DNA of 64,000 nucleotides, from assembly GCA_965603825.1 (NCBI GenBank), contig CBFDEM010000010.1, positions 434,001-498,000 on the forward strand, written 5' to 3'. This stretch comes from Blepharisma stoltei ATCC 30299 (Eukaryota; Protista; Ciliophora). Both the position numbers and the translations under genes were made by a program. The notes beneath the pieces are model-generated. The model was given only the letters and a program-made list of their open reading frames with translations. It had not been told where the DNA came from and did not search any database. Positions 4,355-46,150 of this stretch are shown in pieces. Every line of letters starts with the position of its first letter. The stretch's first letter is position 1.

Positions 4355-5086
4355 CTTTATTATTTATGATGGGAAAATTTTGAGATTGCTAATGACGTAA
4401 TCAGATCATTTTGTTAAGCAAAACTAGAATAGGATATTTTTTGGCAATTAAGGTTAAAAACGAGAGATTTATTAATTTCTTATCGGGAAATAATCATGAG
4501 AAAAGTCTATTCTTATAGAATAGGATTTGATGAAGAATATGCAGAATTAAGGAGTTCATCAATATAAATAAAAGATTATCGATAAATAGCTTATAAATCT
4601 AACATAAATTGAATTCAATCTATGAAGATGCTATGCATTTTTACCTCCCAAATTAAATTTGATGCCAGCTATTTATATATATTATTTAAATAGAAACGTT
4701 AACTCTAATGATTCGTACAGTAATTATGATAAGATTAAAATTTTACAAAATATTCAAGCATAAATTCATATTTTTACTCGGTATAAGACATTTGAAAAAC
4801 TAATCTGATTAATTATCTAAATAACTTTTAATAATAATTTCTTTATTTATTCTATAAAACAGATTTATCCAAGATTTTGCTTTTTCCTCAGCACACTTTA
4901 CTGTTTATTTTAGCCATATAGCGCGTGCTGTTAAAAATAATAATACTAAATATATTAATCCCCAGAAATCTCCCTTTTTAAATTCAATTCCCTATGACCA
5001 TTAATTCAGTCATATTTAATCTTATCCAAATAGTACCGGAATGTTGATTTGTTAAATGGTGCATTTTATCTCAAATAATAATTCTG

Positions 5087-5599
5087 ATGAAGTATGCAAT
5101 TTTGTTCATGCTTTGCGCAGCTGCATTTGCAACAGGCATAGATGATATAAAAGGTAGATCTACAAGGGAACTTGGAGGATGGTGTTATGATTGGGACGAC
5201 GTAAATGATAGCAATGGAGGGGCTGACATTGATGAAGCTATGAATCAAACTTTGCCAGTTCAGCTGACAAACACAACAACCAACACAACTGGGCTTGGCA
5301 GCTGTGACTGCAATTGTACATGTGATTGCTTTTCCTGTAATTGCTCGTGCAACTGCACTACACCATTAGGAAACCAAACAGTGCCACCACCTGGCAACGA
5401 CACAAATCAGACTAATACGACAAATTGTACTTGCCATCGCCCTCGTCGTCCTAGATGTCACCAAAGATGTAGGCCATTTGACTGTGATGGCGATGACTAC
5501 TGGATCACTGAAGAGCTAACAAGGAATGCTGAATTTTTAGAATATGAAGATTTAAGCGATACTATTGATTTTATGGCTGAGCGCCAAGTGGATCCTTAA
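5087..5599 (+). CDS. Secreted Cys/Thr/Asn-rich protein, unknown function
   Basis: Signal peptide MKYAILFMLCAAAFA; CxC run; many NxT/S sequons. Confidence 0.75.
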   Translation: MKYAILFMLCAAAFATGIDDIKGRSTRELGGWCYDWDDVNDSNGGADIDEAMNQTLPVQLTNTTTNTTGLGSCDCNCTCDCFSCNCSCNCTTPLGNQTVPPPGNDTNQTNTTNCTCHRPRRPRCHQRCRPFDCDGDDYWITEELTRNAEFLEYEDLSDTIDFMAERQVDP

Positions 5600-5641: not shown

Positions 5642-6559
5642 TTAAAACTCCATAGACTCCTTTGTGGGTACAAGCGAGTCTGCAGGAGGAAGGCTCAAGC
5701 TTTCTACCGCTATATGCCTTCTATCCAATTTAATTCCAAATGCCAAAGCGTCGAAATCTATATTTTTGAGTGAATGAATCCTAGGACACTTAATGATCCT
5801 TAACAACCCAGAATAATCCCCAAAAGAATCTCCTGAAATTGCAAAATTTTCAGTTGAAAGGACAATATCACAGCTTTGGTTGAGTAAAGTCACTAATTCA
5901 GTTTCCAAACCTGACGTAAGGGAAGTAATCATGCATATTGCATTCAGAGATTTCACCAATAGCTTCAAAGACTGCAAAAACTGAAAAATTTCTGATATAG
6001 GTGCCTTCGGCCATGACGGCCCTAAAAATGATTTTATAAAAATTCGTCTAATTCCAGTATCATTAGCTGATTCTAACGAATTTTGTATGTCACTAAATAT
6101 TTGGCTTCATAATTTCCTATACAAATCTTGTTCTGTTACATCAATTGTGTATTGGTTTATTTTTTCATTTCCCATCGATTTCAATAAATCAAACGCATAA
6201 GGCTCTTTAACTGAGCTCGTCTGTGGATAATGCTCATATCGCCACGCAATTCTTAACTCAGCTGACTCTTGCTTCTTTATTTTTCTGATATCAGGGACCA
6301 GGTTTTCTTCATATGCATCAGAATAAACAAATATTTTTTCTGAATTTATTACGCCTTCTCCTAAGAAGCATCTTGCTATTTGTAATGATTGATAATTAAG
6401 AGAGTCTTCTTGGATTAAAACAATTGAAGAGAGTGGTAAGCCTCCTTGGAATATATGGTCAAGTGAAGGGATTCCTGTGCGCACCAGAGGCAGACTGCTT
6501 GGAGCTGCTTTTTTTTTGGCTGCTTTAGAATGTCTTATGAAAATGCCTGACTCAGCCAT
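5642..6559 (-). CDS. ELP4: Elongator complex subunit 4
   Basis: TGIPSLDHIFQGGLPL, LRIAWRY and C-terminal IKLDRRHIAVESLSLPP motifs; two ORFs joined in frame by TGA at 6107-6109. Confidence 0.88.
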
Positions 6560-6565
6560 ATAATA

Positions 6566-7594
6566 ATGATCAATTTAGAAAGGCCAGGGGAAGAGGTTAA
6601 AGATAAAAACACCAAACAAAACTTAAAAAGGAGAATTTCAAGGCTGATTTTAGATATAAACCCTTCTTTAACAGAACAAGAAACTTTTGAAAGGTTTCCG
6701 GGATCGCATCCTGTTTCTTTTACAAGAGATCTATTGGGCGCAACATGCCAATATCTGATTTGTGAAAAGACTGATGGGGTGAGGTATCTTTTGTTTATCC
6801 CTGCTATACCAAAACTTAGAGGGATTGTAGAGGTTTTTGCTTATCTTGTTGATAGGAAGTTTGCGTTTTGGAAGGTGGTTCTTTATATCCCAGGGAATAT
6901 GCTGACTGGGGATAGTTTATTCGATGTTGAGCTTGTCATAGATTATAACACTGATATCAGATTATTAGTTTTCGATACTCTTTATGCAAGAGGGATGTGC
7001 TACATGCTTAATAATTACTATGAAAGGCTGAGAGCGGCATGGCTTGAGCTAATATATCCAATTCGTGAAAGTGGGACTAAATCAAAAAACGCAATTGAGC
7101 TATTTTTGAAAGATTTTTATAGGACTGATGATATAGATTTCCTCGTGAACTCTATACAAACCAGGCTCCCACATGCAACTGATGGGATAATTTTTACTAG
7201 AGTTGATGCTCCTTATATTGTTGGAACAAACAGCAATATAGTTAAATGAAAACCAAATAACTTGAATTCAGTAGATTTTATTATAAAGCCAAGCCAAAAT
7301 GATGGAATTTACAATCTTTTTACCAAAAATTTGAAAATTATTGAAAAATTTGGGGAAATTGAAATATTTGACGAAGAGCAAAGAGAAATAATTAAATATA
7401 ACCAAAATCTTATTGCGGAGTGCTGCTATTTAGATGGAAAATGGAAGATTCATAAGATTAGGACAGATAAAGATACCCCAAATACAACTCTTGTCGCGCA
7501 AAGGGTTTTTAAGAGTATATCTGATAATGTGACCGTTGAAGAGTTAATAGCTGCTTTCAAAGCAAAATCGTTAAAAGCGCATAAATCTCAATAA
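6566..7594 (+). CDS. mRNA capping enzyme, stand-alone guanylyltransferase
   Basis: FPGSHPVSF, KTDGVRY (motif I), FDVEL, DGIIF, K(TGA=W)KP motif V at 7247, RTDK motif VI. Confidence 0.92.
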
Positions 7595-7721: not shown

Positions 7722-9240
<1,519 letters not shown>

Positions 9241-43999: not shown

Positions 44000-44965
44000 A
44001 TGGGGTTGGACGAAGATGAAGTGTTGAAACATAATAAACCTAATGACGCTTGGGTAACCTATAAAGGAAGAGTCCTTAACATAACTTCATTTCTTAGCGA
44101 TCACCCTGGTGGCTCTGAAATCATAGAGCCTTATTTAGGAAAAGACATCACAAAGCAATTCGACGAAAATGACCACTCTGAAAACGCAATCAAAATGACA
44201 AAAAACATGGAAGTTGGAAACCTCACGAAACCTTCAAAACCAGAAGAAAATTTAACTATTGACCCAACCCGAGGTCTTGTTTACCAAGTCTTCACCAAAC
44301 TAAATCTTAAGGCATACCAAGACTTTGTCAATGATCCAAAGCACACAAAAACAAATGTTAGAGTTTTTGATTCGCCGATTTTAGAACCTTTTTCTAAAAC
44401 CCCTTGGTACGCAATTCCAATTTTTTGGATTCCTGTCATGCTATTTTATGCCTATTGTGGTTTAAAACTTGGAATTATTTCTTTTGTTTGTCTATTTTTA
44501 TTAGGAGTGGTGTGGTGGACCATATTTGAATATTCACTTCATCGATTTGTATTTCACAGTGAAAAATACTTACCGGACAACCCTTATTGGATTGTATTTC
44601 ATTTCTTATCACATGGGATACATCATGCTTATCCTATGGATAATCTAAGATTAGTTTTTCCAATAGCCTTAGGTGTTATACTAGTAATTGTGCTTAAAGC
44701 AGGAATATACAACAATTTAATGCCAGTTGCAGTTGCAGATGCATTTGCTGCAGGGAAATTAATGGGGTATATGTATTATGACCTATTTCATTATTATTCA
44801 CATCACAGCCGACCGCATATTAAATATTTTAGCTTTATGAAGACTTATCATATGGCACACCATTATAAAGACCCATTAAAAGGCTTTGGAGTTTCTAATC
44901 ATTTTTGGGATATTGTTTTTGGGACTTTACTTCCAGTTACTTATAGGCCGACATCACTGGATTAA
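44000..44965 (+). CDS. FA2H: Cytochrome b5-fused fatty acid/sphingolipid 2-hydroxylase, copy 1
   Basis: HPGG cyt b5 domain; His boxes HRFVFH, HGIHH, HYYSHH, HMAHH; GFGVS. Confidence 0.93.
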   Translation: MGLDEDEVLKHNKPNDAWVTYKGRVLNITSFLSDHPGGSEIIEPYLGKDITKQFDENDHSENAIKMTKNMEVGNLTKPSKPEENLTIDPTRGLVYQVFTKLNLKAYQDFVNDPKHTKTNVRVFDSPILEPFSKTPWYAIPIFWIPVMLFYAYCGLKLGIISFVCLFLLGVVWWTIFEYSLHRFVFHSEKYLPDNPYWIVFHFLSHGIHHAYPMDNLRLVFPIALGVILVIVLKAGIYNNLMPVAVADAFAAGKLMGYMYYDLFHYYSHHSRPHIKYFSFMKTYHMAHHYKDPLKGFGVSNHFWDIVFGTLLPVTYRPTSLD

Positions 44966-45184: not shown

Positions 45185-46150
45185 ATGGGGTTGGACGAAG
45201 ATGAAGTGTTGAAACATAATAAACCTAATGACGCTTGGGTAATCTATAAAGGAAGAGTTCTTAACATAACTTCATTTCTTAATGACCACCCTGGTGGTTC
45301 TGAAATCATAGAGCCTTATTTAGGAAAAGACATCACAAAGCAATTCGACGAAAATGACCACTCTGAAAACGCAATCAAAATGACAAAGAACATGGAAGTT
45401 GGAGACCTCACGAAACCTTCAAAACCAGAAGAAAATTTAACTATTGACCCGACTCGAGGTCTTGTTTACCAAGTCTTCACCAAACTAAATCTTAAGGCAT
45501 ACCAAGACTTTGTCAATGACCCAAAGCACACAAAAACTAATATTAGAGTGTTTGATTCTCCAATTCTAGAGCCCTTCTCTAAAACCCCTTGGTACGCAAT
45601 TCCAATTTTTTGGATTCCTTTCATGCTATTTTATTCCTATTGTGGTTTAGAGCTCGGATTTATTCCTTTTATTTGCCTTTTTCTTTTAGGAATTGCATGG
45701 TGGACACTGTTCGAATATTCGCTTCATCGTTTTATATTTCATAGTGAGCCATACCTACCAGACAACCCATACTGAATTGTATTTCATTTCTTATCACATG
45801 GGATACATCATGCTTATCCTATGGATAATCTAAGACTGGTATTCCCAATAGCCTTATCTTTACTGTTATGGCTAGTATTTAAACCTGGCTTATACAATCA
45901 CATAATGCCAATTGCAGTAGCCGATGCCTTCTTTGCAGGCAAATTAGTGGGGTATATGTATTATGACTTATTTCATTATTATTCACATCACAGCCGCCCT
46001 CATGGGAAATACTTTAGCTTTATGAAGACTTATCATATGGCACACCATTATAAAGATCCATTTAAAGGCTTTGGAGTTTCTAATCATTTTTGGGATATTG
46101 TTTTTGGAACTCTACTTCCAGTTACTTATAGACCGACATCGTTGGATTAA
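45185..46150 (+). CDS. FA2H: Cytochrome b5-fused fatty acid/sphingolipid 2-hydroxylase, copy 2
   Basis: Same length as copy 1 when TGA 45773 is read as W; all His boxes intact. Confidence 0.92.

Follow-up and report, generated by a model that had tools for sequence, protein, structure and literature searches.

In Blepharisma stoltei, the gene for Elongator subunit 4 (ELP4) and the gene for mRNA guanylyltransferase (the capping enzyme; GTase) stand head-to-head with 6 bp between their start codons, both are expressed, and their mRNAs probably overlap at the 5' ends. The junction lies in the 64,000-nucleotide stretch of DNA that we analyzed (the window; C10:434001-498000) and reads CAT at 6557-6559, ATAATA at 6560-6565, and ATG at 6566-6568. 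This is the geometry that a sequence-only reading of the same DNA had described, and both ATGs open long ORFs that match Pfam families (Table 1). The same reading had held that a conventional intergenic promoter has no room here, which is correct, since the spacer is the only noncoding DNA between the two genes.

Two coding sequences separated by 6 bp

Both ORFs were translated with UGA as tryptophan, the code given, together with introns of 15/16 nt, for the B. stoltei macronuclear genome in its description (10.1101/2021.12.14.471607). Direct support for this assignment comes from GTase codon 102, where the window and a related transcript differ by a TGG/TGA exchange. For the Pfam searches, each protein was queried as the pieces on either side of its single UGA. 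The ELP4 pieces matched PAXNEB/ELP4 (PF05625) at 2.4e-19 and 3.6e-21, and the match covered most of the profile (14-340, 2.4e-43) above the curated cut-off. In a search of the 41.46-Mb, 64-contig assembly, the window gene was the best and the sole full-length PAXNEB match. A second, weaker match, at C14:314817-315470 (minus strand), is possibly another RecA-fold Elongator subunit. A homologue search with the N-terminal ELP4 piece gave no match, but its length window left out full-length relatives, and the blank result carries no weight.

The GTase pieces matched mRNA_cap_enzyme (PF01331) at 2.1e-27 and mRNA_cap_C (PF03919) at 2.5e-15, giving a nucleotidyltransferase domain with the KxDG motif (KTDG, residues 68-71) followed by an OB-fold C-terminal domain; CEK.DGV was invariant in the alignment of GTase homologues. 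The protein is a stand-alone enzyme of GTase and OB domains, and its single-copy gene encodes the only mRNA guanylyltransferase in the genome.

An in-frame stop sits five codons upstream of the ELP4 ATG, and the next in-frame methionine is residue 129, so the ATG at 6559 is required; both the start of the PAXNEB match (residue 21) and the IAWRY motif come before residue 129. In the GTase, the next in-frame methionine is residue 112, past KTDG, and the earlier observation that the next methionines lie beyond essential motifs therefore stands for both genes. Neither ORF needs a hidden tiny intron at its start, and none appeared in the RNA contigs. A/T at positions -3 to -1 is usual among 107 predicted starts.

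Table 1. Features at the ELP4/GTase junction (window coordinates)
Feature	Position	Strand	Basis and remarks
ELP4 (Elongator subunit 4, PAXNEB family) CDS	5642..6559	minus	305 aa, one UGA-Trp, intronless; Pfam and RNA contigs
Spacer ATAATA, 6 bp, between the start codons	6560..6565	none	A/T-rich start-codon context on both strands
mRNA guanylyltransferase (capping enzyme, GTase) CDS	6566..7594	plus	342 aa, one UGA, intronless
Minimal inferred antisense overlap of both 5' ends, 31 nt	6541..6571	none	X4 contig start at 6541, X2 contig end at 6571, X1 bridge
GTase reading frame continued upstream, with ATGs at 6455 and 6530	6455..6565	plus	Antisense in ELP4; probably not used
Out-of-frame 6-codon uORF (MPDSAI, stop TAA)	6543..6563	plus	In the inferred GTase leader; ATG 2 nt from 6541; read from sequence
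T9 tract; its minus strand encodes Lys-Lys-Lys of ELP4	6509..6517	plus	About -32 to -24 from 6541; post hoc candidate promoter element
A-rich stretch (75% A+T) that codes for the Lys-rich N terminus of GTase	6601..6640	plus	About -30 to -70 relative to 6571, minus strand; candidate promoter region for ELP4

RNA contigs extend past both start codons

The RNA data came from four public runs of one study (X1 to X4), in which the locus is present as assembled contigs. These contigs are unstranded and not cap-selected, so their ends give minimal extents, from which neither the start site nor the share of molecules can be read. They behave as RNA: a 15-nt intron at 8556 and a 16-nt intron at 8894, both in a neighboring calcium-dependent-kinase-like gene, were spliced out, and 590 bp of intergenic DNA (4388-4978) had no cover.

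In run X1, a single contig (5835-7534) bridged both genes with zero mismatches, which requires at least 30 shared letters, provided that the contigs were built from 31-letter words. Run X2 gave two unjoined contigs, an ELP4 contig that stopped at 6571 and a GTase contig that began at 6569. In run X4, the GTase contig began at 6541 and cover over 6318-6540 was zero; ELP4 reads would have continued leftwards into this bare interval, and the k-mers at 6541 therefore do not come from them. We inferred the strand of contig ends from continuity of this kind, a read from the other gene being one that would have extended the contig. The X3 contigs reached neither start codon. Bin depths recomputed from the contig ends (6.37, 77.9, 35.7, and 55.1) matched the tabulated values exactly, which leaves no room for unlisted contigs in the gaps.

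By their ends, these contigs put ELP4 RNA at least as far as 6571 and GTase RNA at 6541 or further left, which suggests leaders of at least 12 and at least 25 nt, respectively. The geometry agrees with complementary mature 5' ends in three of the four runs, all of them unstranded and not cap-selected. The X4 and X2 ends have exactly one 31-letter word in common, a coincidence that could be assembler-made, and the ends could also come from minor upstream starts. The contigs of three neighboring genes ended before reaching their own ATGs. The depths of the ELP4 and GTase contigs were of the same order, which is a weak measure. For annotators, the locus is a warning that unstranded transcript assemblies fuse pairs of this type.

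Start sites that probably cross

Measured ciliate leaders are short, with a median of 19 nt in Paramecium tetraurelia (PMC5485702) and a length of about 18 nt in Halteria (PMC7858049); in three Paramecium species, the middle half of the starts falls at -9 to -26, in A/T-rich patches (10.64898/2026.09.19.752804). Two leaders of ciliate length on a 6-bp spacer imply an overlap of roughly 20-40 nt, as the contigs show, and leaders of that ordinary length would place each core promoter in the partner's coding sequence.

We propose that ELP4 and GTase are probably ordinary, separately transcribed Pol II genes from between which the intergenic DNA has been lost. Each gene would have kept a leader that is short, as is normal for a ciliate (about 12 nt for ELP4 and about 25 nt for GTase), such that the start sites would cross, the GTase mRNA starting near codon 6-7 of ELP4 and the ELP4 mRNA near codon 2 of GTase, and the two 5' ends would be complementary over about 31 nt. 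Both core promoters, and a nucleosome-poor region at roughly 6500-6610, would lie within roughly the first 20 codons of the partner, and the two initiation complexes would overlap and presumably fire alternately on any one DNA copy. A polyploid macronucleus could buffer a conflict of this kind.

The sequence-only reading had offered two options, antisense-overlapping 5' ends with promoters embedded in coding sequence or almost leaderless mRNAs from a point-like bidirectional start, and the contig ends at 6541 and 6571 support the first. Under the second, most mRNAs would start in or beside the A/T spacer and the longer contig ends would represent a minority. The most A/T-rich 20-mer of the region (6561-6580, 85%) does lie here, Paramecium starts fall in such patches (10.64898/2026.09.19.752804), leaders can be shorter than 7 nt in Encephalitozoon cuniculi (PMC2803860) and about 3 nt in Giardia (PMC1885649), and the contigs give no proportions. 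Against this, the contigs pass the two ATGs by 12 and 25 nt, where those of the three neighbors stop short of theirs, so at least part of each RNA population would carry a leader longer than the <7 nt of a nearly leaderless mRNA, and measured ciliate leaders are mostly 9-26 nt. We therefore consider a point-like start unlikely and favor crossed start sites.

The candidate promoter elements in Table 1 (the T9 tract and the A-rich stretch) were picked after the fact, and nine T9-type runs occur in 186 kb of ORFs. An AUG as close to the cap as that of the uORF in the inferred GTase leader is usually skipped. The 60 nt upstream of each ATG have 32-33% G+C, compared with a median of 23% for the 107 predicted starts, about 11% of which are equally high. 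Synonymous divergence was not lower in the first 16 or 25 codons when two related loci described below (L005 and L012) were compared with each other or when the window was compared with L113, a transcript of another Blepharisma (P, 0.15-0.55), and a sequence-specific promoter element within coding DNA is thus not supported. Hexamer enrichment upstream of the 107 predicted starts gave no motif attributable to the ELP4/GTase junction, and a search for stable leader hairpins found none. A bacterial promoter scan produced one match versus 0.6 expected, of the wrong promoter type, and was discarded.

Tight divergent pairs recur in the genome

We counted divergent spacers in 264 kb, made up of the window and 200 kb of contig C1, with our own simple gene finder; the counts are thus based on predicted starts. 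The 34 predicted divergent junctions consisted of the 6-bp junction, one of 18 bp, and 32 of at least 135 bp, with a median of about 630. When the index case is excluded, 1 of 33 is tight (3%; 95% range, 0.1-16%). No spacer among these 33 fell between 19 and 134 bp, for which P is about 0.009 against a simple exponential, in what is a small sample of predicted starts.

The two genes of the 18-bp pair (C1:230815-230834) stand head-to-head: an ODAD1-like coiled-coil gene lies on the plus strand, and a Rab GTPase gene, with the Ras domain beginning at residue 5, lies on the minus strand. On contig C41, PSD13_N (RPN9) and Thg1 (THG1) matches face apart with 45 bp between the domains, and on contig C35, an RF-1-domain gene and a CapZ-alpha match diverge with 60 bp between the domains; these coordinates confirm very tight head-to-head packing, not exact gaps. 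The ELP4/GTase junction had been singled out as the most unusual architecture in the window, with uniqueness implied, and this did not hold up, because tight pairs recur in these three cases and on other ciliate-like contigs. The junction is a member of a recurrent minority class, at the extreme of compact head-to-head packing.

Relation to known compact arrangements

Tetrahymena has 885 head-to-head pairs with shared start regions (PMC11754650), and in Paramecium, divergent pairs tend to wider spacing (PMC8997361). These ciliates share with Blepharisma the divergent neighbors, the gene-dense macronuclear genome, and the short A/T-rich start regions, but the Blepharisma pair has its ATGs 6 bp apart and starts that would lie inside the partner's coding sequence. 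The E. cuniculi RPS16/RPL13 pair also has a tiny divergent spacer (35 bp), and transcripts overlap their neighbors in microsporidia (PMC2803860), but leaders there are <7 nt and the spacer still has room for the promoter motif, whereas the Blepharisma spacer is shorter, its leaders look normal for a ciliate, and the host is free-living, with a 41-Mb genome and a usual divergent spacer of several hundred base pairs. Giardia bidirectional promoters are similar in their loose A/T-rich initiation, short leaders, and starts also from A/T patches within genes (PMC1885649). The genes of the Giardia ran/phd pair, however, share an intergenic region of 153 bp, and upstream transcripts in Giardia are often sterile, whereas the Blepharisma pair yields protein-coding mRNA both ways without an intergenic promoter. 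In B. stoltei itself, the supplement of the genome description (10.1101/2021.12.14.471607) reports overlapping 3' ends of convergent genes, likewise a sense-antisense overlap of mRNA ends, which it ascribes to compaction; compared with these, a 5' overlap would additionally move the core promoter into coding DNA.

A canonical bidirectional promoter serves two divergent expressed genes with close start regions, as is the case here, but from nonoverlapping starts around intergenic DNA, whereas our contig ends cross (6541 on the plus side and 6571 on the minus side). The junction works like a compact bidirectional promoter region yet departs from one in this respect. Animal and plant 5'-overlapping cis-antisense pairs have complementary 5' ends and the promoter of one gene in the transcription unit of the other; the overlaps usually lie in long UTRs or first introns, with the start codons far apart, whereas the proposed Blepharisma overlap spans both start codons. 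In the open-access literature searched, we found no description of heterotrich ATG-to-ATG spacers of <20 bp with crossed 5' ends. The ELP4/GTase junction is a variant of the already known compact head-to-head packing, and the probable crossing of the 5' ends at <20 bp would be the new part.

If the crossed starts hold, a free-living eukaryote with divergent genes normally at least 135 bp apart uses, for an essential single-copy gene, a promoter made solely of the coding sequence of another gene. Such pairs would be natural minimal cases for the definition of core promoters with weak motifs and minimal space, a question raised for ciliates (10.64898/2026.09.19.752804), and would raise the issue of how complementary mRNA 5' ends are tolerated in cells whose small-RNA system is active.

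The capping-enzyme gene has different partners in relatives

We found 10 GTase homologues with 49-56% identity, including that of Stentor coeruleus, and examined the neighborhood of the gene in S. coeruleus and related loci, part of the synteny check that had been suggested for the pair. Tight spacers were found in some loci, but ELP4 was never the neighbor: it was absent from beside the orthologous GTase gene in all 11 related loci (L001-L006 and L008-L012), and at these loci the pair is therefore not conserved as adjacent genes. In L005 and L012, which group with Stentor (support, 93/99, below the tool's star threshold), GTase lies 6 bp head-to-head (junctions at L005:2992-3003 and L012:1194-1205) from an orthologous uncharacterized 810-aa coiled-coil gene whose Met1 is conserved and whose products are 82% identical. 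The 12-bp junction of L005 is a perfect palindrome, and the 6-bp spacer of the pair has been kept across about 50% synonymous divergence. In L001-L003, a glutaredoxin gene diverges from GTase with its likely start 4 bp away; the gene caller chose an internal methionine, but in the longer form the Pfam domain already starts at residue 25. The divergent neighbor is 79 bp away in S. coeruleus and 426 bp away in L006, L011 and L114 have none nearby, and L008-L010 have tandem neighbors.

A spacer of 4-6 bp was thus found in three lineages with three different partners; L001 and L010 come from very compact neighborhoods (gaps of 1-21 bp). L001:126-4899 is ciliate-like, with 43% G+C and intergenic gaps of 1-21 bp, and L010:1838-3004 is ciliate-like, with 48% G+C and a dehydrogenase gene whose called stop overlaps the capping-enzyme ATG. 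The L113 transcript (91% identical) starts at GTase codon 7, short of the junction; compared with window positions 7125-7141, it lacks 17 nt in mid-GTase, with a frameshift, perhaps from cryptic splicing or an assembly error. A metagenome scan with the GTase alignment returned only relatives of 26-34% identity, of no use for synteny. It is conceivable, although we hold it to be doubtful, that crossed promoters form a class of their own across heterotrich genomes (on the order of at least 100 gene pairs), with the two Pol II core promoters of each pair lying wholly in the partner's first codons, an empty spacer range between this class and ordinary divergent promoters, and repeated entry of the capping-enzyme gene with different partners.

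These partners bear on whether the junction has been selected as a regulatory unit, in which a shared promoter or 5' antisense pairing would couple the expression of ELP4 to that of the capping enzyme. Both are single-copy housekeeping genes for gene expression, and their contig depths, weak as that measure is, would fit; the lack of ELP4 at every related locus and the change of GTase partners among lineages argue against coupling, as does the finding that Paramecium start-start pairs are no more co-regulated than other neighbors (PMC8997361). Coupling thus seems improbable. The pairing looks like tolerated compaction with no functional Elongator-capping link, and we see in it no pointer to a new pathway.

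A developmental origin of the tight spacer, with a germline eliminated sequence at the spacer TA and ultra-tight pairs as excision products, would be compatible with crossed starts, as it concerns origin. In this lineage, excision boundaries usually lie at TA. Blepharisma has many intergenic eliminated sequences (10.1101/2021.12.14.471607), but TA is common in any A/T-rich 6-mer and the L005/L012 spacer has persisted despite its synonymous divergence, and we regard this origin as very unlikely.

The GTase start codon and the integrity of the junction

The sequence-only reading had taken both ATGs to be required, which is so for ELP4, but had overlooked upstream GTase ATGs. With UGA as tryptophan, the GTase frame is already open from 6440 and has two upstream ATGs inside ELP4, at 6530 and 6455; were either of them used, the coding sequences would overlap and the 6-bp gap would not be the real geometry. 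This is very improbable, because eight GTase homologues start at a methionine matching 6566, the coding score peaks at 6566 (57.2) and drops on extension to the upstream ATGs (55.7 and 50.6), and the X4 contig begins downstream of 6530. Homology and domain boundaries show both start codons to be those at the 6-bp spacer. For annotators, a longest-ORF rule under this code would put the GTase start at 6455, overlapping ELP4.

That a longer spacer was collapsed during assembly, which would have undone the earlier reading, is very unlikely: in three runs, contigs built from RNA include the spacer without a gap or mismatch, the locus exists in one copy, other organisms assembled independently have similar spacers, and we found no evidence in favor of a collapse.

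Elsewhere in the window, an expressed gene for a 170-aa protein with a signal-peptide-like start and Cys/Thr-rich repeats (5087-5599, plus strand) is convergent with ELP4 at 42 bp, and allelic variants of it are present in the RNA contigs. Two near-identical tandem genes at 44000-44965 and 45185-46150 have a cytochrome-b5-like start and, judging from their translations, possibly encode fatty-acid hydroxylases.
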